Shown here piece after piece: positions 70 through 30,059 of a stretch of 30,059 bases of DNA; position 1 is the stretch's first letter; each line of letters starts with the position of its first letter. The stretch lies in the NCBI GenBank assembly GCA_002269645.1, contig NIVC01000902.1, positions 69,477 through 99,535 of the forward strand, read 5' to 3'. Both the position numbers and the translations under genes were made by a program. The notes under the pieces are model-generated. The model was given only the letters and a program-made list of their open reading frames with translations. It made no database searches and was not told the origin of the DNA. The stretch comes from Macrostomum lignano (lineage: Eukaryota).

Positions 70-2397
70 ATCCAGAGTTGCAAGACATAACCGGAACTTC
101 CTGTTTGGACATCTTCAAGAAAGGATTCTACCTCTCTGACTACTACCTGATCAACAATGAGAGTCAGTATTGCCACCTGGCTGGTTAGTGAAATTGCCTA
201 CAAGTGTCGTTTTTCAAGTATCATTTTTGATCTTGATAGTTAATAAGAGCCAATCCCAAACTATGACCTGGCAGACAACTCATCCAGTCAGTGCGCCAAC
301 GGCAGCTTCGCATTCAATGGCTCTTGCTTTACCTTTCACAATCGCCCGGCTACGTTTGAGACGGCAAGCCAGAGCTGCGCCTCCTCGGGCGGACTGCTAG
401 CCAGTTTTGCTACTGTGGAGCGACTGGAGTTTTTAAAGATGACTCTCTCAAGTAGGTTGCTTTAGTGCTTTGTGGAAATCTTTCATCTTCGGGAATTAAG
501 CAGACAGTACGCGTGTGATATTTTCAAATAGCTTTCAAAAAAGGTGGTCACCATAGGCGCGCACCGGCACAAGCGCCAGTGTACTTTATGTCAAAGATCG
601 GGCATACTCGCGAGATCACAGGTGTACACGCGCAGATCAATGCGCAGTCAATGCTTGGTAGTAGATAAAGGTGATCAAGGTGTTTATTCGCCTTTCACAA
701 AGTACTTGATTGCACTGTATTTGTACGAAGTATTCGTACTAAAGTTCTGAACGCAATGAAAATTATTTGAGTCACAAAAACAAACAGATGTGCACTCGCT
801 GACGAACTCATCCAACTGGTGGCTCGGCTTCACCGACTCAAAGCAGCTCAAGATCCCCACGTGGCTCAACGGACACATCTACTCGGACAGCCAGCTGTTC
901 CCCCATGCTCGGACATTCCTGTTCAATCGCGGCTCGAAATTCTCAATAAAAAATGCGCCTGTATTGGGAAACCCGACTGGCGACCCCCTGAATGCCGCTA
1001 CCCTCGCCAGCTACGTCTGCGAGCCGAGAAGGACCCGGGCTGCCTGAAGATGGTCAGCCTTGCAAATTTCACGCACCGGTCCAGCTTCATGAGCCTCTCC
1101 ATGTGCCGCTACCTCTGCTTCTCCGCTGGCTTTGCCTACTCAGCCGTGATGCAGCAGAACTGCTCCTGCCTCAGCAGCCTCTCGGTGGCTGAGTACGGCA
1201 TTGAGGACACCAGACCGCTGGACTACTGCAATGCGCGGTGTCCGGGAAATCCCGACCAGTTCTGCGGCCGGTCAGCTGAGCCATACTTCTCCGTGCACAG
1301 CGCAGGTCTGTGTAGAATTTCATTTATACCGTACGTCGAAAACTGGAAAATGTCTTCCTAATATTCTGAAATTTTAGAAAACCTGCCTCCCGCCGCGAAC
1401 TGCTCAGTTCTGTACGCCAACGATATTCACTATCGGTTTCGGTACAAACTCTACAACACCAGCGGCCACAACTACTACTTCATGAACTGCGGCTTCACGG
1501 GTATGAACTTATGAAATTATTATAATTATGACAATATTGTCATGCTAACGTAAGTGTAATCAGAGAGTTCAAACATATATATTAGAAAATAATAACTTCC
1601 AGACCAGACTGCCTGCTCTGACGGCTGGTACGGCTTCAAGGGCAGCTGCTACCGGACGTTCAACGAGTCCCTGACTGAGGCGGCGGCCAGCCAGGCCTGT
1701 GCGCTGAACAACAGCTTCCTGGTGACTTTCCCAAGCAGCGAGTATTACGAGTTCGTGAAGAGCCTGACCACGCTGCTGCCGTACCACGCCAAGTTTCCCA
1801 ACTGGCTGCTGGGCTACGCAAAGCTGGACGGCTCTCAGGCGCAATCGCCCGTCATCAGCGCGTTGGCGACTTCGCAATGTACACCGGCGGCCCGGCAGTG
1901 CCGGACAGAGCGGCTACTGGAAATCTGCACAATTCTTCATGCGCAACGGCTCGGTGGTCTTTGAACCAGCCGCCACTGAATTCGCGCCCGTCTGCATCAG
2001 CAGCTCAAGTCAGTTCAGGCGTTGAATTTCATATTTCTCACCATTAACGTGCTTTTTGAAGTTTATTAGTATCTACTGGAAGTTTTACAAATAAACTTCA
2101 GTCATTTTTATACACAACTTTTACCAGATTTTGCTGCCTGCGGCCCGGCCTCGAACAGTTCGATGTCGATGCCTCTGCCCAGCGAGCTGTACCAGATCCC
2201 GCAGCAGTGCCTGCAGCTGTGCCGCTCAGCTGGTCTGCCATATGCCGGCCTGCTGCCTGGGAACTGCAGCTGCAGCGGTGCGCTTTCAAATTCCGCTACG
2301 GATAGAACTCTGTCTGACTGCTACGTGCAGCAGTGCAGCCATGTGAACTTTTCCAACTGCGGCTTCAACAATACCAACTGGGCCTGGTACCGGACGA
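70..2397 (+). CDS. Two repeats of [2-Cys cap, C-type-lectin-like domain, WSC domain] (part of unit 1)
   Basis: CTLD motifs: QCANGSFAFNGSCFTF...ASQSCASSGGLL...NWWLGF...YVCE and ACSDGWYGFKGSCYRTF...ASQACALNNSFLV...NWLLGY...PVC. WSC motifs: GCLKM...MCRYLCFSAGFAYSAV...NCSC...CNARCPGNPDQFCG and QCLQLCRSAGLPYAGL...NCSCS...C...QC...NCG. Confidence 0.8.
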
Positions 2398-5300
2398 GTA
2401 AGCATTGTTTAACCATCGCTCTAATTCTGTCTTATTTATAGCAAACTTTTGGACAGCGGCATTTATCATAATCGATCTGCCGTTAACTCTGCTTTTTCGC
2501 CGTCAGATGTTTCACAGTTCCGAATCGCTTCATCCTGCCGGGACTTGCAGGGCATGCTTTTTATGCAGCCCAAATCCCACAGCCTGCAAATCAAAGACAC
2601 TCTGGAGATCTATACTGCTGACTGCTTTTCAGAAAGGTGCGTTTTTACAATCAGCTGCTAAAAACTTTATTGCTAAAGCCCAATCCATTAATTTCCTTAC
2701 AGTTCAAGCTATGGAGCCATCAGTGTGTCTGGAAGAGAAGCCAGGGTTGAATTTAATCAGTCAACCATTGTATCAGGATATATTATGAAAGGTTTGCTTT
2801 TGCTTCCACAGATTAGTGGTTCCATGTTTTTTCACTGGTAGTACTATTATATAATTGCCTAAAACAATACTTTTTCGTAGAAGACGACGTGTTCAAGACA
2901 TTCAAGTACAGCTACAACAACGCTGAGCTTCATTGCAGCGCTTTAGCAAACAATTTTGGAAATGAAGTGAGCATCCTGTAGAAACACTTTAGAACAGAAC
3001 TTTCCAGTGCTTGATAAGTTTGACACAGGTCACTAGAATCTTGAGAACCTGAACTCCGGCCAACCAAACCAAAACTATTTCAGCGGTACCCTGGTTTTGG
3101 CGCATTCTTCACTCCAAAGACGGTGTTGTTCCAGCGGCCTGTGCTGACCAACAACTTCAGGCTGGTGACAGCTCATTCTGGCTGGCAGTTCAGCTCCAAG
3201 CTGCAGCTGAGGCTGATAGCTCAGCCCTACAGCTCGTTCAACGGTTGGTTGAGGAGTTATTTTAGTCGGATAGGTTAAATGCATCGATGCCCTTTGGGTT
3301 CAGATTGTCTATAAACAAAATTAACCAACATATAGGGTATCGAGTGACTAGTAGCAGATAAATCTTGAAATCAACAGTGACTGAAGTGTTCTGAAACTCG
3401 AATTACTTGTGTTTCTTGTCTCACTGTGTCTCCTATTCCAGTGAGCAACTCCTACTTGGGCTGCTACTACCTGCAGTCCGGCCTAACAGCTGCTGATTCG
3501 ATAATGCCGCACTGGTCTGAGGCGGCCTCTCAAAACGAGTCGGCCTGCACTGAAGCTTGCAGATCGTGGGACCTGCCGTACGCCATGTTTCAAACGAAGA
3601 CGATATCGGGTGAGTCTTCGAGATGGGAATGTGCGGATAAGTAGCTGTTAAAGTTGAAACTTTGTTGGGTGAGTCTTGAATGTAGAATACAGCAAAGATT
3701 ATAAGCTAAGGAATTTTATAATTTCAGACAAAGAATCGCAGAATTTGGCCTACTGCGGATCCAGACACTGGCACTTTAGCCCGCAACTGGGCGGCTGTGT
3801 GGCAATCCACAAGAACATCAAGTTCAGGCCAGCCAGTGTGCTGCTGGCTGACTTCCATCCGGGCAAGCTCGCTACCGAGGCGGCGTCTCTGTGCGGGGAG
3901 ATCGGAGGCTCCGTGTTGGTGCACAACGACTCAAAGCTGCCCGTCTGGCTTAGTGAGCAGATGTCTCTACTGGCACACCTTAATACTGTATAACTTTAGG
4001 AGATCTAAGATCTAAATTAAAAACCATAAAATAATCAGGAAGCTGTGTCTGATGTGGCTTTTGTCGAATATCTTTCTACCTTTGTAGAAAGTTTGCAGGT
4101 GTTTGTAGCCTAGTGGTTAGAGCGTCGAACTGAAAGGTCGGGAGTTCGATTCTTGACCCACTCGAACAATTTGTGTCCTTGAGCAAGACACTTAACTCTG
4201 CATTGCTTCAGCTCACCCAGTTGTAAGCTGGAGTAATTGAGGGTGTGTGACGACCCCGCAGTCCTTGGACTGAACAGCCGTACGCAGCCTTCAGATGCTC
4301 CGCACAATAGCTGCGGCTAATTGTCGGTTGCACATCTGCCCGTTGCGGCAGTTGTAATCAATAATCAATAATTATTATTCTACTTTTCAGATATCCTTCA
4401 AGAATTTCAGCCAAAGCCGTGGGTCTATCTGCTGAATTCAAGTGAGAGTCTGAAAGCAATTTCACGCACTCAACTCAATGTACAAGTATTTTTTCAATGA
4501 TAATTTCATATTTTCAGCCACGGATTCGCTGGTGGCGTACTTTAGCGGCCTCGATGGCGCTGTGCAGAAATTTAAAGAAGCCTACAGCGCTGACCATCTG
4601 AAAATGCACAACCTTCAGCTGAGCCTTTACGCACGCTCAGAGTATCCTCTCATTTGCTTTAAAGGTACATTGAAGCTTGGTGGCGGTAGAGCTTGAGCAT
4701 TAGTTTGCGTTGCAGTAAACTCTACACAAAAGCTTTTTTTCACCGCAAATCAACTTATTTCAGAAGCAAACGCTTCAACGTACAATCAGAGCACAGAAAG
4801 CAGCAACGGTGGGTATATTTTCTCGAAGCTCTGAGTGAAAAATACAAATCGATATTGCTGCATGCAACATTTTTCTCCAACCACCGCATCAAGCAGGCAG
4901 CTGCTTCTGTACGGTGGACTACACCATCTATGGCAAAACCGGCTCGGACGAACTATGCTCAACCCCCTGCTCAATTGCTAATAAACCGCAGTGCCAGGAC
5001 AATGTAGCTAGAGTTCATCGCACCTGGAGTGAGTCGTTTTGATTTAGGGTCTGAATGGCTGAGTATCGGACATACATCAATGATTTTCGCTATTCACCTG
5101 CAGACCTGGCCTGCTTTAACACGCCATCTGTGCTGAACGCCAGCATCGAGTCGGAGCCGCAGCCACACCACCGAGTTGGCGACAAACTGCTGGCCAACTG
5201 CATCTACGGCTTCGAGTTTCTACCTGAGGTCAGGGACAACAGGACCTACGTGTGCGACCAGAGCGGCAGCTTTGCCTACCTGCTGAGCTCGGGGCACCGG

Positions 5301-8300
5301 TTCTACAACACTAGCGATGCGTGTGTTGGTGAGTGCTGCTTTACCTGAAATACTGCATAGGTCACCTGGTGTTCTGAAAGTTGTAGGCTAAGCAAACTCC
5401 TTGACGATTTCAGTAAAGCGCTGCCCAGCTCTCAACAACCAAACAAGTCCTTTAACTCTGGAATCAACCTACCTGTATCAGAATAGAACATGGATTGAAT
5501 CCACGGTTCAGGAATCGTCCGCCCGGTTCCTGTTCGACCACTCGGATCCGTACAACAATGCGGTCAACGCCACGGCTGTCAAGCGCTGCAATCAGGGCTT
5601 CCTGCCATCAGATGACACGGAGATGCTGTGTCTAATTGACAAAACCTGGTTGAATTTTGATTCTCCTTGCACCCGTGAGTTGATTTTTAACTATTCACAT
5701 TTCTCATACGAGTACTTGTAGATGAAACTACTGTAATTAAAATTTTATTAAATTTTTTATTTTTTTCAATCAATCAGGAATTGCGTGCCCGGAGCCAGAC
5801 AACCTGACTGATGCCTGGATTGATCGGGTTGTCGCAAACGCTGCCCCAATCAATGGTACTCAAGTGCTTGCCTACAGAGACTATGTGGTCTACCGAACGC
5901 GGCAGGGCTACGAATTCCCGCCAGTAGACGGCTCGGAGGCTGTCGGGCTGTCGGAGTGGCGCTCCGTCTGTCAGGCCACCGGCAACTGGAGCTCCGTGCC
6001 GCTGCCTCGGAGTGAGTGTCGTTTTATGCTGAGCTGGCTTCGTGGAGATGATGTGCCTGATTGACATGTACCGTACAAATAGTTGCACAACGCAATCTTG
6101 AGTCATTTCTTGAGCAGCGTCAGAGGGCTGGGGTGCAAACCTGGGCCGCGAACAGAACCTGGTGCACCGGCTTTGCCAACAGACAATCGCAATAACGCCG
6201 AGTAGGGCGTCTGCAGTGCCTGCAGCAGCACCTCCTTTATCGGCTCAGTGCCGATGATGTGGCCTGCTAAGTGGACTCGCCGGCACAGCAACTGAGGGCC
6301 AAGTGGTTGACCCGCTCATCCTAGATACCATTTTATTAAATCGAAACATTGGGAGCAAACACTAATTTCCACAATAGTCTATTCTTCGAAATTAATTTTC
6401 TACCAAAAATTGGTTTAACTACAGAGATCTACTGTCACCTGAGGATCTCCAACCTGACCGCCCTGCCGAACGTCAGCCTGTCGAACTACAACAGCTCCGC
6501 TGCTCACAGGTACCTGGACACAGCCGTGATTTCGTGCGCCAACTCAAGCACGCACGAGTTCGCGCTGGCGCCCAGCGTCCTGCAGTTCGACATTCAGTGC
6601 AATGCCGACCGGGTGTGGACGAATGAGTCGGTGTGGAGCCGGGGCTGTAGGCGTGAGTTTCAGAGATTTAGAGCTTGTGACTTTGCGAGCATACTGAGGG
6701 AGTTATTGGGAGAGTATCGCGCTTTTGCATCATCGTACCAGACTGGGTCTGAAATTGGTGCTGTGAATTTCTATCAGTCGCATTTCTCATTTCCAGTAAA
6801 AACCTGCCCGCCGCCCGAAATCGAGTCGGTGCCCTATCAGCTGGTCGGCGTCAGCATTAACCGCACGGAGTACATTAAGCGGCTGCTCACTCACCCGATC
6901 GTTAGCAGCAAAGCTTTCGTGTTCAGCGAGCTGCAGCTCAGCTGCCCTGACGGATTCTTTGCACCGGATGAGGCGCCGCGCTCAACTCTCTGCCTGCCGA
7001 ATGGTACTTGGACTGCGTTCGAAAACTGCTCAAGTGCGTTGTGATTTACCCTAAATTCAAATGCTATTCCTAGTCTTGCAGATACCAAAGTCAGGATACG
7101 AGTGTTGTGCTCAAAAGCAGGTTTTTCCATTGCTTCTGCCTGATTTTCAACCTCCAGGAAGCAGCTGCGGTGAGCCGCCAGCGGTAGGGAAGGCCAGAAT
7201 CACTCGAAATGCGTCCAACATTGTGGGAGAGAACTTTCGACTCTACGACACGGTCTACTACTTAGCAGATGCGGGCTACCAGTTTTCTGGTGTTGAGCGG
7301 CCCTGGCACTTCATCAGCTGCACTTGGAACTCCAGTCTCAATGAGAGCTTCTGGACTGACCTGCCTCCGGTAGAATGTGAGTGCCGAGTGTATCCTATAA
7401 ATCGCAATGCGTTTACTGATTAGTGACATGTGACCTGACAGAGTAACCTGTGACCTGACTGAGTGACCTGCGACCTGACAGAGTAACCTGTGACCTGACT
7501 GAGTGACCTGTGACCTGACAGAGTAACCTGTGAGCTGACTGAGTGTCCTGTGACCTGACAGAGTAACCTGTGAGCTGACTGAGTGACCTGTGACCTGACA
7601 GAGTAACCTGTGACCTGACAGAGTGACCTGTGACCTGACAGAGTAACCTGTGACCTGACAGAGTAACCTGTGACCTGACTGAGTGACCTGTGACCTGACT
7701 GAGTGACCTGTGACCTGACAGAGTAACCTGTGACCTGACTGAGTGACCTGTGACCTGACTGAGTGACATGTGACCTGACAGAGTAACCTGTGAGCTGACT
7801 GAGTGACATGTGACCTGACTGAGTGACCTGTGACCTGACTGAGTGACCTGTGACCTGACTGAGTGACATGTGACCTGACAGAGTAACCTGTGAGCTGACT
7901 GAGTGACATGTGACCTGACTGAGTGACCTGTGACCTGACTGAGTGACATGTGACCTGACAGAGTAACCTGTGAGCTGACTGAGTGACCTGTGACCTGACT
8001 GAGTGACATGTGACCTGACAGAGTAACCTGTGAGCTGACTGAGTGAACTGTGACCTGATAGAGTAACCTGTGAGCTGACTGAGTGACCTGTGACCTGACT
8101 TAATGAACTGTGACCTGACTGAGTGACATGTGACCTGACAGAGTAACCTGTGACCTGACTGAGTGACCTGTGACCTGACTGAGTGACATGTGACCTGACA
8201 GAGTAACCTGTGAGCTGACTGAGTGACCTGTGACCTGATAGAGTAACCTGTGACCTGACTGAGTGACCTGTGACCTGACTTAATGAACTGTGACCTGACT

Positions 8301-11300
8301 AAATGACCTGTGACCTGACTGAGTGACCTGTGCCACTTAAAAAGTGTAATTTTCGCGCATGAGGCGCGGGTCGGATGAGTTCAGTTGTCCATGTGAACAT
8401 TTATTTTGATCCGAGAAAGCATTGTATTTTTAGTAGGTTATAAAATATATCACTCAGAATGCTGCACTTCAATCTTTTCACTCATTGCAGTGGGCCGCTG
8501 CCCGGCACCTGCCGTCCCACAAGCCGTGTATCAAATGCCGACCTGGAACTCCACCGCCAAGGCAGTCGAATTTGTGAGGCTCAACGTGAGCCTCTTCGCT
8601 TTTTCTTCCAACATTTCGCAGCAATCTTTCTCCAGAAACTTCATTGTGTGCGCACCTGGGCACAAGAACCTTGACAGCGTAGATCACATCGAGTGCCAAT
8701 CAAGCTGGCACTGGAGTCCGATGCCCAACTGCTCTCGTGAGTAGCTATTAATCTGGACGTTAATGATAATTCCAGGTAGGTTTTGGGCACCCTGGAACAA
8801 CGACTCCGGCCACATCGTCCCAAAACCACTGATGGTGCTGCTCTGCCTATTCCGCAGACTCCTGAGTTCGTATTGAAAATGTTTCATTCTGCAGGTTTGA
8901 ACTGTCCGGAGCCCCCACAGATGAGCAACGCATCGGTGCAGAGCAGCGTGCTTCAGTCTCCGAACTCCAGCTGGTTTCTGTACGACTCCGTGATCTACAG
9001 AGCGAGTCCCGGCTTCCAGTTCAGTGCGGTGAACAGCACAGAGTGGTTCAGCACCTGTCTTTTGAAGAGCGACAATGTCACTACCTACTGGAGGGAAGTT
9101 GCGCCTCCGAAAAGTAAGGAATTTTTATCATGCAATGTCGGTTGTGCTTAAAGTTTGTAAAATACGCTGGTGACTTTCAATTACGTTTTACGCATGAACT
9201 GCCTCGCACCTTACCGTAGGAATTCAGTGTCGTCCAAATCTGAGCGAAATTTTCGATGCAACACTTCTTGATGTCATGAATTCAACGGGAACATTGTACT
9301 TGGACAGTGCTGTCCTGCGCTGTGCCAACTCATCCCTTCGCGAGTTGAGCGCCAGTCGGGATCACAATGAGCTGTCTACCCAGTGCCTGGCAAACGGTTC
9401 CTGGTCCAATGAGTGGCTGTGGAGCTCTGGGTGCTCTTGTAAGTGTCGTTTTCAGTTATTTACTAAATTTGTACTTAGCCTGCCAGCCATTTGTCTTGCA
9501 TTAAATTGGTAGCCCTTACATGTACTTGAAATTAATTTGCAAGCAGAGCCCAGAGAGCACTTTTTATTTTACAAATGCTCCCTTCCAGTCATCAACTTTT
9601 TGTTCAGTCAGCTCGTCGTCAGCCAACGCTCCTAGGCCCATGCATTGCACAGTTGCAATAAAAGTACATGTTGTTGAGTCAGATAGCTTACCCTATAATT
9701 TCACTCTATCAGACTACTTTTGGCCCATTACCTAAAAGATTGTAGCTTATGTATGAAGTATCGAATGTATGTCGCATTCAAGCCATCGCAAAAGTCAGCT
9801 AAACCGCATGAAATGCTCAACTTTCTCTCGGCAGTGAAAACCTGCCCAGGCTTCGTTGCAAACCAGGAGGAAGTGTACACGGTTCATTGTCACAACGGCA
9901 GCTTGGACTCCGTCTACAACCAGACCATAAGCGTCAGAGTCGCCCCATTCACCAACTCGAACGTGTCGGCAGCGCCTGTGCACACAGAAGTGCAGCTGTG
10001 GTGCCCAGCAACTCACTTTCTTCCGCCCAGCGCGCCCAATAAAACCTGGTGCCAAGAGACCAAGAACTGGTCTAGTTATGAGTCCTGCGTCAGTAAGTTT
10101 ATCTGCTTGAAATCCGATGCTTAAATTGTTTAAGTACTGTTGTATTGATTTGCTGGTTGACTGATTCGCCCTAGTTAATTGAAATGATGTCTTTTGACTC
10201 GGATTCAGTTGGTTTATCTCGCATTATAATCTCACTAAACATAACTTTTAGGACTGGCCTGCCCGTCACCGCCGGCCCCGTCTGGTGCCAGCGTCAGCAG
10301 CCACTTCCTCAACCGGCCGCCAGACCCGCAGCTGCGGCTTTTCGACAGCGTCTTCTACGAGGCTCTCAGCGGCTCCTACTTTACCGTCATCAACTCTACC
10401 TGGTGGCTGAGCACCTGTCTTCTAAATGAGTCCAGCGGCCTACCCTACTGGACCGAGCTGTTCCCACTTGAGAGTGAGTGAATGACGCACCAAGTGACGT
10501 CATTTGTATTCAACGTGTTTTTATACATGCATACAAAAATTAAGTTATTAGGTTCAATACTGAAATTGTCCTAAACAGTAACAGTATAGGAACCATTGAT
10601 ATCGGTCATTGTATTTGATTTTTAGCGGGCCAATGCGTTCCCGGAATCGCGGAGCTGTCCGCTCTGCCCGGTATTTCTCTGATCGGAAACTCGAGCGAGC
10701 TCAACCGCACAATCGAGATCCGCTGCCTCGACGCAGCATCGCAGGAGTTTTTGGACGCGCCATCCGTGACCGAGTTTCACTCCGTGTGCCAGCCTGGAGG
10801 ACAGTGGAGAAACTTCAGTCAGTGGGGACATGGCTGCGGCGGTGAGTCTGGATGTCGCGAGCTGGCAGGGATTGGCCTGGCTGTAGACTTAGAAAAGTAT
10901 ATATTAAATATTGCAAAGCAACGTTGCTGCTTTCTTCCAGCGTAGGTTTTAACAATTAAATAATGATAAAAGCTGTTACTTTAAGCATTTACTAATAAAA
11001 TCTTAATGGATACTTTATAGTATCCTGTGCGCAATATTTCAAGAGCTGAAGACCTAGAACTGGGTAGTCATTCTTATTCTCAAACTTTCTAGGACGAACC
11101 TGTGACGCCATTTCCGTCCTTGAGCGGCTCTTCACCATCGCGGAGATCAATGAGAACGCCCAGCTTGCTGGATACCGCAACATCAGCTTGTCCTCGCTTA
11201 ACTTGACGTTGCCTGCGGCTGCCCAGAACGGCAGCAAGCTGCCAGTTGGGACTCGCCTGAGCATCGGCTGCCCTCCCGGACTTCGGTGGCAGAGTGGCGC

Positions 11301-11820
11301 TCCGGATTCCACCGTGTGCCGACAGGATAGGACTTGGAGCTCTTACCAGCTATGTCAGCGTGAGTTGCTACAGAATCTGACAGTCCCAATGTTCTTAGTG
11401 CTTGAAAAGAAGTATCACATGTGCTTTAGGTAACATCAAGTGCTACCGGAAGAATTTATTTAGCATGAGAGCATTTCTTTTTACCGTGCTACTATTTTAT
11501 CATAGAAGCAATCGATAATAACGGCACCCTACTAATACAATGAAAATGGAAACTTCAGGACATTTCCGGTTTTCTATACTTCAAACCTACTTCAGGCCAG
11601 TATTGCCGGATCGCTTCTCCCGTATTCGGAGCTGAGCTAAGCGACTTCCATCTGCTCGAGCAGGCGGAGAAGTACCGCGTGCACGACCTGATCCGATACA
11701 AGGCGGAGTACGGCCGCCTGTTCTCGGGCAGCAACAGCAGCTACGCTTACTCAAAATGCGCCTACAATGATGAAGAAGAATACGGCTACTGGACTCCGGT
11801 GCCTGCGACCTTCTTAGCCT
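70..11820 (+). CDS. Unit 1: spliced gene (5'-partial) for a giant extracellular mosaic protein with C-type-lectin-like, WSC and 14 Sushi/CCP modules
   Basis: Hand-built exons with AG/GT ends: 70-183, 248-451, 788-1305, 1378-1500, 1603-2008, 2128-2397, 2507-2636, 2812-2837, 2881-2966, 3084-3243, 3442-3609, 3728-3952, 4391-4441, 4518-4664, 4764-4808, 4897-5028, 5104-5328, 5414-5674, 5778-6011, 6425-6652, 6797-7033, 7158-7376, 8491-8736, 8895-9113, 9220-9438, 9835-10092, 10252-10473, 10626-10841, 11093-11359, 11596-11820. Splice phases chain correctly, mostly 1-1. Exons 788-1305 and 1603-2008 need indel correction. The 3' end is unresolved. Confidence 0.85.
2507..5028 (+). CDS. Third cap with degenerate CTLD, then a WSC domain interrupted by a four-exon CTLD-like cassette (part of unit 1)
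   Basis: 2507-2966 gives SSCRDL...DC and VPCFF...YNNAELHC. 3442-3609 is the WSC N-half (YLGCYY...CTEACRSWDLPYAM). 3728-4664 is CTLD-like (YCGSRHWHF...GGCVAI...EAASLCGEIGGSVL...PWVYL...PLICFK). 4897-5028 is the WSC C-half (SCFC...LCSTPCS...QCQ...VHRTW). Confidence 0.7.
4096..4379 (+). mobile_element. tRNA-derived SINE with CORE-like central domain (intronic)
   Basis: Pol III A box TAGCCTAGTGG and B box GAGTTCGATTC, then TGTGTCCTTGAGCAAGACACTTAAC...CAGCTCACCCAGTTGTAA, which resembles the MIR/CORE segment as I recall it. It has a (TAATCAA)/(TAT) tail. A second copy lies at about 19580-19886 on the minus strand. Confidence 0.8.
5104..11820 (+). CDS. Array of 14 single-exon Sushi/CCP-like modules (part of unit 1)
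   Basis: Fourteen phase 1-1 exons of 216-267 nt, all multiples of 3. Each shows C-P...(C)xxG[YF]...CxxxGxW...(C), for example VKTCPPP...LSCPDGFF...CLPNGTWTAFENC. Confidence 0.85.
6100..6300 (-). mobile_element. Decayed 3' fragment of an RTE-like non-LTR retrotransposon (intronic)
   Basis: The minus strand reads RRVHLAGHII..EPIKEVLL..LQTPY, then after a shift RRYCDCLL and AGAP. This resembles the post-RT C-terminal region of RTE-group ORFs. It is GC-rich within an AT-rich intron. Recognition is from memory. Confidence 0.45.
7422..8332. repeat. 20-bp minisatellite (about 45 units) with local 60-bp higher-order repeat, intronic
   Basis: Consensus GAGTGACCTGTGACCTGACT with variants GAGTAACCTG, GTGACATG, TGAGCTGACT and TGACA. 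Lines 7921-7980 and 7981-8040 are identical. Confidence 0.97.
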
Positions 11821-14137: not shown

Positions 14138-14236
14138 ATTCCTTGAGTGCAGAAGTCAATACATTCCTCGGGTGCAGAAGTCAATATATTCCTCGGGTGC
14201 AGAAGTCAATACATTCCTCGGGTGCAGAAGTCAATA
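14138..14236. repeat. 25-bp tandem repeat TCAATACATTCCTCGGGTGCAGAAG; the last unit is split by the Tc1 element and resumes at 14862
   Basis: Full copies at 14156-14180, 14181-14205 and 14206-14230, a diverged copy at 14138-14155, and a split copy TCAATA (14231-36) ... CATTCCTCGGGTGCAGAA (14862-79). Confidence 0.9.
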
Positions 14237-14859
14237 TACTCAGCAACAGTCAAAAGTTCCACCCCACTAAGCGAGATGATTTTTTCACTTATTGCGAGTG
14301 ACGCAACCTACGGCAAGCGCAAAGCTTATTGCCGCTTGGGGGTGGCTTGGGTCTGCTTAATGGTCCAGGCCTGGACATTAAGCAGACCCAAGCCCAGGAA
14401 CAACGCCCCGCCACACCAAGCCGATGCTGTTAGTCAACTGAAGGAACAGCTACAGCTGCGCACTCTGCGCTGGCCTTCCCGGTCCCCAGACATGAATCCC
14501 ATCGAGCATGTCTGGGACTTCCTAAAACGTAGAATTCGAAAAGAGAATCCACCATAGAATGTTGCGGAGAGCTCTGCGTCATGCCATTGAAAACGCTTCG
14601 GAGCGGCTTCCCCAGGACTTTCTGCGCCGCCTCATCATTGGGATGCCCCGCAGAGTCGTCGCACTTCTGCGTGCGAGGGGATCCCACACGCATCGCGATT
14701 CTAACTGAATATTGCATAAAAAATTATGATTTTACTACGAGTATTGATAGTCAATCACTTTCCCTTCCTCGCGGCAGCTTAGTTGCGTAACTTGAGGGTT
14801 GAATTGTGAGTGTGAAGTTTTCGCGATTTGGAGGGTGGAACTTTGACTGTTGCTGAGTA
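14237..14859 (+). mobile_element. Non-autonomous Tc1/mariner element (623 bp internal-deletion derivative)
   Basis: TIRs TACTCAGCAACAGTCAAAAGTTCCACCC (14237-14264) and GGGTGGAACTTTGACTGTTGCTGAGTA (14833-14859). TA is duplicated at 14235-36 and 14860-61. A transposase C-terminal remnant lies inside. Confidence 0.92.
14395..14695 (+). pseudogene. Tc1 DDE transposase C-terminal remnant
   Basis: NNAPPHQA...LRWPSRSPDMNPIEHVWDFLKRRIRKENPP, a TAG stop, then after a shift LRHAIENASERLPQDFLRRLIIGMPRRVVALLRARG. The second catalytic D appears as N. Confidence 0.9.
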
Positions 14860-17536: not shown

Positions 17537-19133
17537 CCTAATACTCAGCTTGGTACACAAGTTAGCTTGATGCCACTGTTTTCAGCTCGGCCGAAATCTT
17601 CCCGCTTCTGGTTGCAGCTGTCATTCGCATGTAGTGAAGCGAGTCCCATAATGCGCCGTCTACGTACGCCTCTGTTAGACCTGCCATTACGTACGCCTCT
17701 GTTGTCTGGGTTAGCGCTACCCAGGTCAAAAGCCATGCAGACCTGCTCAACACGATCCAAGGCAGAGCGTGTAGGCTCATCTGCAACGCCACCAGGTCCA
17801 CGCCCTTTGCTGGCATGGGGGCCTTTCTTAATCTTCCGCCTCTTGACCTCTTCATCAGGGGTGAGGCGGCTAGAACGACGCGGCGTCTAATTGATGCCGG
17901 CGTCAAATTCATTTACATGAGAGCACCTGCTAAGCGGAACCTTGTCCCGCATAGCGATCTGTGCCTCAACTTTCTCAACGAGTGTCAGGCCAATCGCGTC
18001 TTCACCGATGGCATTGCCTCAACGCTCAACCTGAGACAGCGCTACTCCGTAGCTATCGACTCGCGCGATAACATCAATGACCATTGGAACCCTGGTGAGC
18101 TTCATTGCTACACCGACGGTTCTAAGCAGTCAGCCAACACCGGCTTTGGTGTTGGAATCTTTCTGAACGGGAGGGTCATCGCTACCCACGCTCAATACAC
18201 TGGGGTCAACTCCAGTGTTTTCCAAAATGAAGTTCTGGCCATCAGCTCCTGCACTGCAGAGCTTCTCGCCACTGGCGTTACTGGTAAGAACATCATTTTC
18301 CATTCGGACAGCCAAGCTGCCTTGCACGCCATCAGTGGCTGCAGCACCAACTCTGCTACAGTCCTTGACTGTATCAAACTCCTCAATGTGTTGGGTTCCG
18401 CCAACAAAATTACCCTTAAGTGGGTTCCGGGGCATGTGGGGATCCGAGGAAATGAGTTGGCTGACACCCTTGCAAAAGTTGGTGCCTCCGGCTCCTCTCT
18501 CGGCCCCGAACCTCTTGTCCCGATTCCTGGCTGTGTCATCGACTCGCGCATCAAAGCGTGGATCAGGACTCAGCACCGCTCGACTTGGGCGAACCGCACG
18601 AACTGCAGGCAATCCAGAGGCGCTGTCCCTCAGCCCTCTCACCAGCTCCGGAAGCTCCTCTTGCGCCTCTCGCGCAGAGACATCCGGGCTGCCACCATGA
18701 CCCTCTCTGGTCACGGCTGCTTCTCCAGGCACCAGTACCTGCAGGGCAACGCCACCAACGCCACCTGTAGTTTCTGCAACTCAGGTGACGAAACCGCTGA
18801 GCATTTCGTCAGCATCTGTCCCGCCTTCACGCGGGCCAGACTCACTTACCTCGGGCCACACACATCTATTACTGAAGCGTGCAAACCCGAAAACTTTAAT
18901 CAGCTCATGCGCTACCTTCGGGCCACCCGCAGGGCTGAACTCTCCTTTCCAGAGAGCACCATAGCTGCTGGCGACACTGGGGGACCTCCCTGGGCGGCGC
19001 CAACCCTCCGTCCATAGCGACGCGTCGGCCGTTCAGGGACTAGCGGAATGGGCGCCCGCGCCTTCCCGCTGTGTCCCCTCCGGGACAGCCCTGCAGCTAA
19101 GTCAAAGCGCCGTCTATTTGCAGAGCCGAGAAT
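17537..19133 (+). mobile_element. 5'-truncated non-LTR retrotransposon with RNase H (I/Loa/R1-like group)
   Basis: Recognisable post-RT motifs start near 17662. It has a GC-rich 3' UTR and a short AATAAGAAG end. Candidate 8-bp TSD AAGAAGTC at 17529-36 and 19134-41; the 5' boundary depends on that TSD being real. Confidence 0.8.
17638..19017 (+). CDS. Non-LTR retrotransposon ORF2 C-terminal part: RT thumb/linker, RNase H, CCHC zinc knuckle
   Basis: The frame is open from 17638. Motifs: VRPAITYASVVW, QGRACRLI...STP...LPPLDL, CYTDGSK, VFQNEV, HSDSQAAL, WVPGHVGIRGNELADTLAK, LSGHGCF, CSFCNSGDETAEHFVSICP. The ORF-track start at 17815 is an internal Met. Confidence 0.92.
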   Translation, partial: SESHNAPSTYASVRPAITYASVVWVSATQVKSHADLLNTIQGRACRLICNATRSTPFAGMGAFLNLPPLDLFIRGEAARTTRRLIDAGVKFIYMRAPAKRNLVPHSDLCLNFLNECQANRVFTDGIASTLNLRQRYSVAIDSRDNINDHWNPGELHCYTDGSKQSANTGFGVGIFLNGRVIATHAQYTGVNSSVFQNEVLAISSCTAELLATGVTGKNIIFHSDSQAALHAISGCSTNSATVLDCIKLLNVLGSANKITLKWVPGHVGIRGNELADTLAKVGASGSSLGPEPLVPIPGCVIDSRIKAWIRTQHRSTWANRTNCRQSRGAVPQPSHQLRKLLLRLSRRDIRAATMTLSGHGCFSRHQYLQGNATNATCSFCNSGDETAEHFVSICPAFTRARLTYLGPHTSITEACKPENFNQLMRYLRATRRAELSFPESTIAAGDTGGPPWAAPTLRP

Positions 19134-19579: not shown

Positions 19580-19886
19580 GGGCAGCTGTTGCAGCCGACA
19601 TAATGCCTAATGGGCAGCTGTGCAACCGACAGCTCAGCCGCTGCTATTGCGAGGCGCTTCTAAAGTCTGCGTACGGCTGTACAGTCAAGGACTGGGGGTC
19701 GCCACACACCCCCTCAATTAACCCAGCTAATGCTGGCACCCATTTTACAGCTGGGTGAGCTGAAGCACTGCAGAATTAAGTAGTGTCCTGCTCAAGGACA
19801 CAACTTGTTCCGAGTGAGTCGAGAATCGAACCCCCGACCTTTCAGTTGTGAATCCCACGCTCCAACCAGTAGGCTACAACCCCTGT
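19580..19886 (-). mobile_element. Second copy of the tRNA-derived CORE-like SINE
   Basis: The reverse complement reads TAGCCTACTGG...GGGTTCGATTC...TGTGTCCTTGAGCAGGACACT...CAGCTCACCCAGCTGTAAAATGGG...CAGCCGTACGCAG...GTCGGTTGCACA, collinear with 4096-4379. Confidence 0.85.
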
Positions 19887-19963
19887 CTATAACCCCCGTA
19901 CAGGCAGATAGGTACTTGTTAAAATTGTTAATTAGAACAACTGCTGCAGGTTACGGCCAGGTA

Positions 19964-20513
19964 GTTTTTGTGCAGTATCTCAGCTAGAATACTGACTCGA
20001 ACGCAATAAACTGCACAAGTTTTTGTGCAGTATCTCAGCTAGAATACTGACTCGAACGCAATAAACTGCACAAGTTTTTGTGCAGTATCTCAGCTAGAAT
20101 ACGGACTCGAACGCAATAAACTGCACAAGTTTTTGTGCAGTATCTCAGCTAGAATACGGACTCGAACGCAATAAACTGCACAAGTTTTTGTGCAGTATCT
20201 CAGCTAGAATACGGACTCGAACGCAATAAACTGCACAAGTTTTTGTGCAGTATCTCAGCTAGAATACGGACTCGAACGCAATAAACTGCACAAGTTTTTG
20301 TGCAGTATCTCAGCTAGAATACGGACTCGAACGCAATAAACTGCACAAGTTTTTGTGCAGTATCTCAGCTAGAATACGGACTCGAACGCAATAAACTGCA
20401 CAAATTTTTGTGCAGTATCTCAGCTAGAATACTGACTCGAACGCAATAAACTGCACAAGTTTTTGTGCAGTATCTCAGCTAGAATACTGACTCGAACGCA
20501 ATAAACTGCACAA
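19964..20513. repeat. 55-bp tandem array, 10 copies, with inverted-repeat unit ends
   Basis: Unit GTTTTTGTGCAGTATCTCAGCTAGAATAC[T/G]GACTCGAACGCAATAAACTGCACAA. Units are head to tail with no spacers. Confidence 0.97.
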
Positions 20514-20843
20514 GCAAACGATTTTTCGTTATCAAATAACTGTTTTCGCACTGAAAATTTATGAAAAAATAAAATAGCTACCTCTGAGCAATTTGCTATT
20601 GCAGTCGTTTGCAGTGTGTCTCTGGCGCAGGTGAACCAGTGCTGTACACCAGTGAGCACTCACAACTGAGTTGTCCCGTGTTCACTGATTGGCTGGTCCA
20701 GTGGTTTGCGAAAGCTAGAAATTGACTTGCAGAAAACCGATGTCTTATTGAGCCCTTGGTGCCTCATAGCGGCCTACTTTGATACCCCGGCGCAAAACAC
20801 TTCTTGACTGCGATTCGGTGCAAAAATACCCTTGACTCGGATC

Positions 20844-29927
<9,084 letters not shown>

Positions 29928-30059
29928 GTGAGTCATTCAATGGTTGCGTTATAATCTCTCAGCATCACCTGAAATCATCAATCTGCTCCGAGCAGATACA
30001 GCAGGATGATTAGCTTTTCTTTAGTACGAATTAAGGTCCCCAAAGAGATGGAAATGCGT

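Follow-up and report, generated by a model that had tools for sequence, protein, structure and literature searches.

What does it mean when the two halves of one WSC domain are encoded by separate exons with four further coding exons between them? This question is raised by a 30,059-nt stretch of the Macrostomum lignano genome (assembly GCA_002269645.1, contig NIVC01000902.1, positions 69,477 to 99,535 of the forward strand), which is called the window here; all coordinates are positions within it. The window holds part of a mosaic gene on the + strand that is predicted to be very large and to encode a secreted protein. A first-pass annotation, made from the letters alone, had read the split WSC domain of this gene (WSC3 in the following) as a domain-in-domain insertion: the guest would be a C-type lectin-like domain (CTLD), which splicing could include or leave out. 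The nested arrangement is supported by three observations: the host halves are complementary, the split falls at the tip of a hairpin, and the adjacency of N half and insert recurs in a homologue. We consider it likely that WSC3 carries a constitutive domain insertion, with a guest of four conserved cysteines at this hairpin tip. The CTLD label found no support in database searches, and a splicing switch appears improbable.

The two halves of WSC3

Six exons on the + strand make up the region 3442-5028. A script check of the boundaries showed an AG acceptor, a GT donor and phase 1-1 for each of them; each starts with the last two bases of a codon. Their lengths of 168, 225, 51, 147, 45 and 132 nt are all multiples of 3. 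We number these exons 1 to 6 and refer to exons 2-5 as the insert.

3442-3609, + strand: exon 1, N half of WSC3 with Cys1-3, beta1, beta2, a helix and beta3; its C-terminal end ...PYAMFQTKTIS lies at the hairpin
3728-3952, + strand: exon 2, first of the four insert exons, 75 aa; a short linker, then insert cysteines Cys10, Cys24 and Cys56; conserved patches LAYCGS, LGGCV-IHKN and EIGGSV; GC content at third codon positions (GC3) 0.76
4391-4441, + strand: exon 3, second insert exon, 17 aa, NILQEFQPKPWVYLLNS; strong acceptor tract and GTGAGA donor; GC3 only 0.50
4518-4664, + strand: exon 4, third insert exon, 49 aa; its end ...YPLICFK contains the fourth insert cysteine
4764-4808, + strand: exon 5, fourth insert exon, 15 aa, EANASTYNQSTESSN; polar linker with two N-glycosylation sequons (NAS, NQS), beyond the end of the homologue P0001 (see below)
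4897-5028, + strand: exon 6, C half of WSC3 with the CxC strand beta4, Cys4-8 and beta5

The insert amounts to 468 nt or 156 aa (139 aa without exon 3). Splicing of exons 1-6 gives a product of 255 aa (238 aa without exon 3), and the plain joined WSC would have 99 aa. A direct join of 3609 to 4897 stays in frame and reads ...KTIS-G-SCFC.... The exons, their phases, the length of the insert and this join had all been part of the first-pass annotation and were confirmed by the boundary check. GC3 of the insert exons ranges from 0.50 to 0.76, compared with a GC content of 0.32-0.44 in the flanking introns. The two introns that flank the insert are only 118 and 88 nt long. No competing minus-strand gene was found at the insert, where open reading frames (ORFs) on that strand reach 66 aa at most. 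An independent gene nested in an intron was considered as well and ruled out, since the inner exons have neither a start nor a stop codon and are in the phase of the host.

Two further features lie next to these exons. A tandem AAG-CAG acceptor (NAGNAG) is found at 4891-4896, before the exon of the WSC C half; if the upstream AG were used, the junction would gain one alanine. The second feature is an interspersed repeat of about 250 nt that occurs twice in the window (about 4100-4350 on the + strand and about 19590-19850 on the - strand, about 80% identical); one of these copies takes up most of the 438-nt intron within the insert. The repeat has a tRNA-like head (GTAGCCTAGTGGTTAGAGCG...GGTTCGATTC) and resembles a tRNA-derived short interspersed nuclear element (SINE). 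ARAGORN and Rfam reported no tRNA or Rfam family anywhere in the window, this SINE-like repeat included.

Do the two outer exons encode a single domain? Alone, the N half matches positions 1-46 of the Pfam WSC profile (PF01822, 82 positions) with 16.1 bits, and the C half matches positions 49-80 with 12.1 bits. When the halves are joined, the match extends over positions 1-80 and reaches 27.3 bits (E 4.4e-6); without removal of the insert, the match breaks into two stretches and scores 18.9 bits. In this profile check of the joined halves, which the first-pass annotation had proposed, the match was nearly complete in length, and the score stayed 0.5 bit below the gathering score of 27.8 bits. 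The host halves are thus complementary parts of one domain with the guest between them, which is a defining feature of a domain insertion.

We compared WSC3 with its four WSC paralogues in the window (1026-1304, 2130-2396, 27283-27642 and 28778-29053). None of these is split: each forms one uninterrupted stretch without an intron at the position where WSC3 is divided. All eight cysteines of WSC3 align with cysteines that are invariant in the paralogues. The sole difference at the junction consists of 4 extra residues exactly at the split, without loss or duplication. Identity to the four paralogues is 28, 19, 18 and 29% for the N half and 26, 16, 20 and 28% for the C half. The ranking is the same for both halves, in keeping with one ancestral domain and not with fragments of two. 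In the paralogue at 27283-27642, the loop that follows the CxC strand is expanded by about 23 residues, which indicates that larger loops close to the insertion site are tolerated in the family.

The position of the split in the fold was judged from an AlphaFold model of the paralogue at 28778-29053, which had a predicted local distance difference test (pLDDT) score of 74. The best Foldseek matches of this model are yeast Wsc1 (7pz2) and Kremen1 (5fws), with a probability of 1.00 and template modelling (TM) scores of 0.65-0.67. In the model, the split position corresponds to a two-residue turn between the strands 42-46 and 49-53. The WSC domain of Kremen1 has the sheet order beta1-5-3-4-2 and the disulfides C1-C6, C2-C4, C3-C5 and C7-C8 (PMC5014086). 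Following this sheet order, the strands on either side of the split would be the adjacent beta3 and beta4. The model thus supports WSC3 as a discontinuous domain that is split at the tip of the beta3-beta4 hairpin. With C1-C3 in the N half and C4-C8 in the C half, pairing of the Kremen1 type would lead three bridges across the split. If this pattern holds, three disulfides should span the insertion and neither half would be satisfied alone.

Conservation and nature of the insert

An exhaustive phmmer search of 1.84 billion protein representatives with the contiguous exon 2 (74 aa) returned one true relative, UniRef100_A0A1I8IWD3 (P0001 in the following), a Macrostomum lignano 'WSC domain-containing protein' (E 2.4e-16, 58% identity). 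The 255-aa product and the 1519-aa gene model described below gave no match in word-indexed protein searches, though P0001 is in the database searched. Look-ups of the DNA of P0001 and of three ORFs of the window returned no record. The second phmmer match, P0002, is a repetitive 'LADFDPQ' protein that covers only query residues 23-60; it was rejected as low-complexity. According to tblastn, P0001 is colinear with the window from CTLD1 through the insert. The similarity is distributed as follows, with CTLD1 and WSC1 being the first such modules in the window and the X module preceding WSC3:

CTLD1: identity about 50%
WSC1: nearly identical over long stretches
X module: 40% identity to P0001 residues 550-599
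WSC3 N half (exon 1, 3442-3609, + strand): 68% identity to P0001 residues 601-657
Insert exon 2: 52% identity (tblastn)

In P0001, the N half runs straight into the equivalent of exon 2, without a C half between them (...PYAMFQRAAFS-TEKLTSLAYCGS...). The equivalent of exon 4 comes next and aligns end to end with residues 732-779. This alignment has a Smith-Waterman score of 53; shuffled sequences scored 21 +/- 4, and none of 5000 reached 53. Between the insert and P0001, all four cysteines and 53 other columns are invariant.

The recurrence of the N-half/insert adjacency in P0001 shows that the arrangement is not an assembly accident, and the conserved cysteines and patches show that the insert is under constraint. 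Judged by this conservation, the insert is real coding sequence, and the insertion is older than the divergence of the window gene from its M. lignano homologue. The first-pass annotation had named orthologues as a way of checking the insertion, and P0001 bears it out in that both the adjacency and the four insert cysteines are kept. Exon 3 (4391-4441), which P0001 does not confirm, is probably a micro-exon. It may be lineage-specific, it may be skipped, or it may have been overlooked by the annotator of P0001.

What kind of domain is the guest? The CTLD-like label given to it in the first pass received no support from Pfam, the PDB, BLASTP, hhalign or a shuffle-controlled hidden Markov model (HMM). 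Lectin_C (PF00059) and related Pfam families do not match the insert or its P0001 counterpart at E <= 10. The sequences of the PDB gave no match either, whether the insert was used as a single sequence or as a two-sequence profile (phmmer and hmmsearch). BLASTP of the insert against the window's own CTLDs was not significant, and hhalign against the genuine CTLDs of the window returned probabilities of 0.5% and 0.2%. An HMM built from these CTLDs scores the insert at 0.7 bits, a value equalled or beaten by 298 of 2000 shuffles. The C2 and C3 cysteines and the WND and EPN/QPD motifs are absent from the insert on inspection of its sequence, and WIGL-like strings are limited to WVYLL (in exon 3, not confirmed by P0001) and YFSGL/FYSGY. 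When exon 2 was modelled by itself, on an alignment with the N halves of the window CTLDs, the pLDDT was only 51.7 and the Foldseek matches were noise.

As a positive control, we used a joint profile of the three neighbouring CTLDs (248-1023, 1603-2008 and 29362-30010). It matches CTLD structures (DEC-205, PLA2R, mannose receptor, NKG2D), down to E 1e-23. Only one of these three CTLDs passes Pfam Lectin_C on its own. Because such genuine CTLDs are barely detectable by Pfam, the negative searches are weak counter-evidence.

At the level of patterns, a resemblance remains. The insert has an N-terminal Cys-x13-Cys with W and F inside and a cysteine three residues from its end. Its four cysteines (10, 24, 56 and 138), all conserved in P0001, are in positions compatible with C0, C0', C1 and C4 of a CTLD. 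In a MAFFT alignment, three of them coincide with C0, C0' and C1 of the neighbouring CTLDs, although the C0'-C1 spacing is 15 residues longer. The helix motif KLATEAASLC resembles SLTEAAASQAC of CTLD2, and a phase-1 intron is found at a similar place in the insert and in the neighbouring CTLDs. An N-terminal Cys hairpin, a helix cysteine able to pair with the cysteine of a C-terminal strand and the lack of a long-loop region would be compatible with a very divergent, compact CTLD-like fold. We regard such a fold as a serious possibility for the insert, one that we come close to favouring without quite doing so.

The proposed insertion and its alternatives

Taken together, these data favour a constitutive domain insertion. 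The two halves of WSC3 would fold together, presumably stapled by the three disulfides across the split. The guest would comprise about 125-140 residues with four conserved cysteines, encoded by three or four symmetrical phase-1 exons. Short polar linkers that could be glycosylated would flank it, and at the tip of the beta3-beta4 hairpin it would stand out from the WSC fold. Inclusion of the insert is most likely constitutive. Since all four paralogous WSCs lack an intron at the split point, two origins can be envisaged. WSC3 may first have acquired an intron that later received phase-1 exons by shuffling, or a segment with splice sites of its own may have entered the WSC3 exon. Both WSC domains and CTLDs bind carbohydrates or proteins, and it is plausible that WSC3 and its insert could form a composite binding surface.

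Several points weigh against this explanation. The model of P0001 is incomplete and stops with the final residue of exon 4; a C half following the insert is therefore seen only in the window. Exon 3, with its 17 aa, is without a counterpart in P0001. The searches described above assigned the insert to no family or fold, and the joined WSC3 remains 0.5 bit under the Pfam gathering threshold. Finally, three frameshifts upstream of WSC3 raise the possibility that the window copy is partly decayed or mis-assembled.

These frameshifts are the starting point for the alternative that survives best, namely that the locus is a pseudogene or a partly dead gene in which the nested arrangement is not expressed. 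Relative to the reading of P0001, the window contains three 1-nt frameshifts within about 900 nt of upstream coding sequence: one at about 1030, between CTLD1 and WSC1, and two at about 1860-1895 in CTLD2. CTLD1 ends in frame 0 (...YVCEPRR) and WSC1 continues in frame 2 (1024-1036); over about 35 nt, the frame of CTLD2 changes from 2 to 1 and then to 0. In addition, the gene's own product was not found in the protein collection by the word-indexed searches. Against decay, the 23 downstream exons (4560 nt) are free of stop codons and frameshifts and have kept their splice sites, whereas about a dozen indels would be expected at the upstream density. With no frameshift further downstream, an old pseudogene is a less likely source than local errors of the assembly or a decay confined to the 5' modules. 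Moreover, the same architecture exists independently in P0001 of M. lignano. We therefore consider a decaying copy unlikely.

The toggle suggested in the first pass would treat the four inner exons as a regulated cassette, skipped or included as a block, so that the gene yields either a plain WSC or a WSC with an extra module. The block is 468 nt long and in phase 1-1, its removal keeps the frame (TIS-G-SCFC), and the joined sequence still matches the whole WSC profile. That P0001 lacks an equivalent of exon 3 could also mean that at least this micro-exon is skipped. However, symmetrical phase-1 exons are the rule across the gene, and in-frame skippability is therefore no evidence of regulation. 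The only homologous gene model contains the insert. Furthermore, the joined hairpin would be 4 residues longer than in all paralogues, as if it were adapted to carry the insert. In view of these points, a regulated cassette seems improbable. Equally improbable in our judgement is a 'lectin within a lectin', in which a compact CTLD would sit on the WSC hairpin and disulfides across the split would hold the two glycan-binding folds rigid, with regulated inclusion of the cassette or of the micro-exon to alter binding specificity.

It is also conceivable that the two halves are relics of two different WSC domains and not parts of a single fold. CTLD and WSC modules alternate in the gene, and an ancestral WSC-module-WSC arrangement could have lost the missing halves through two deletions. 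These deletions would have to be exactly complementary, leaving profile positions 1-46 and 49-80 with neither overlap nor gap, and the halves alone would have 3 and 5 cysteines. Both halves rank the four paralogues alike, the flanking introns of 118 and 88 nt contain no remnant of the missing parts, and the X module already fills the CTLD slot of the repeat unit. We regard this scenario as very improbable.

Hardly credible, finally, is an assembly or annotation artefact that misplaced the inner exons between the WSC halves: nothing specific speaks for it beyond a SINE-like repeat in the region, while the N-half/insert adjacency is also present in an M. lignano gene that was assembled and annotated independently, and the short introns all have canonical sites and matching phase at their junctions. 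Constitutive insertion of a four-cysteine guest into WSC3 thus remains the explanation that we prefer.

Gene context and comparison with known systems

WSC3 belongs to a 23-exon model on the + strand (2128-11820), which has 1519 codons and 4560 nt, is stop-free and keeps its splice sites and frame. The modules of the gene as a whole, from upstream of this model onwards, follow each other in the order 2-Cys module, CTLD, WSC, 2-Cys module, CTLD, WSC, 2-Cys module, X, WSC3, and then many Sushi-like modules. The features on either side of WSC3 are:

2881-2966 (phase 1-0) and 3084-3243 (phase 0-1), + strand: X module, about 82 aa, splice sites and frame checked
5104-5328, + strand: first of about 14 Sushi-like exons after WSC3, in the same reading frame (stop-free 23-exon model)

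The X module has no Pfam family, and its single cysteine is not conserved in P0001. It sits in the slot that is held by a CTLD in the two preceding module-CTLD-WSC units. With this slot already taken by X, the insert should be an extra element and not the next CTLD of the series. The Sushi-like exons occupy 5104-11820, and Pfam Sushi reaches 67.5 bits over this region.

The two-Cys module consists of about 35-45 aa (sC-D/E-l-y...Y-L...yC), and copies are found at 70-183, 1380-1500, 2491-2655 and about 29060-29200. Each copy precedes a CTLD or the X module, and those at 1380-1500 and 2491-2655 align with P0001. A Pfam scan of three copies (all except 2491-2655) gave no match. The module is reminiscent of the start of fibrinogen-related domains.

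Further downstream, a Sushi-like two-exon unit is present in four tandem copies at 21378-25066, which are 63-88% identical. Such similarity is evidence of a recent internal duplication, presumably in a downstream part of the same gene or in a second gene. Tandem arrays were observed at 7300-8440 (20-nt unit), 19853-20622 (55-nt unit) and 25790-26750 (8-nt unit). The 20-nt array yields spurious long minus-strand ORFs at 7262-8009, and the 8-nt array causes a spike in GC skew at 26-27 kb. The gap between the coding blocks (12-20.5 kb) contains transposon remnants at 14147-14554 and 17638-19014, where a piece of a DDE_3 transposase (38.9 bits) and an RNase H domain within an ORF (44.6 bits) were detected.

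How does WSC3 compare with known proteins? In extracellular mosaic proteins, the modules are as a rule strung up like beads, each with a symmetrical exon set of its own. Polycystin-1 and other mosaics of WSC and C-type lectin domains combine both modules in one extracellular protein, as the window gene does, but there the modules stand in series and are not nested. Canonical WSC domains (yeast Wsc1, 7pz2; human Kremen1, 5fws; PF01822) share the eight cysteines with WSC3, and the joined halves match their profile nearly full-length. They are contiguous, as are the four other WSCs of the window, whereas WSC3 is interrupted at the beta3-beta4 hairpin.

Domain insertions of the type A1-B-A2 are found in about 20% of multidomain proteins, and their guests typically have 50-200 aa and close termini (PMC13114784). 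The WSC3 insert falls into this size range, with or without exon 3. The main text of that survey does not mention lectin or WSC families, and our full-text search of the literature returned no description of a WSC interrupted by another domain. WSC3 and its insert are thus a new host-guest pair, while domain insertion itself is already known and common; no major concept is changed. The insert would define a conserved four-cysteine module without detectable relatives outside its gene family. Since the paralogous WSCs lack an intron at the split position, WSC3 would be a natural test case for exon shuffling that places a module inside the exon of another module.

To our knowledge, nested modules are rare among small disulfide-rich domains, and laminin L4 in LE is the textbook case. 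The L4 domains sit between Cys3 and Cys4 of the 8-cysteine LE module (PMC5338690). This is the closest analogue of WSC3, with a guest (globular in laminin) between Cys3 and Cys4 of an 8-Cys extracellular host in both proteins. In laminin, the disulfides span the insertion and the host stays intact. The partners differ: the host is a PAN-like WSC instead of an LE module, and the guest is a four-Cys module without a detected fold instead of a CBM35-like beta-sandwich. The laminin case is conserved across animals, whereas that of WSC3 is so far known in two Macrostomum-type genes only. As a second, unrelated nested example, WSC3 would show that a large guest can be accommodated at the beta3-beta4 hairpin of the PAN-like WSC fold.

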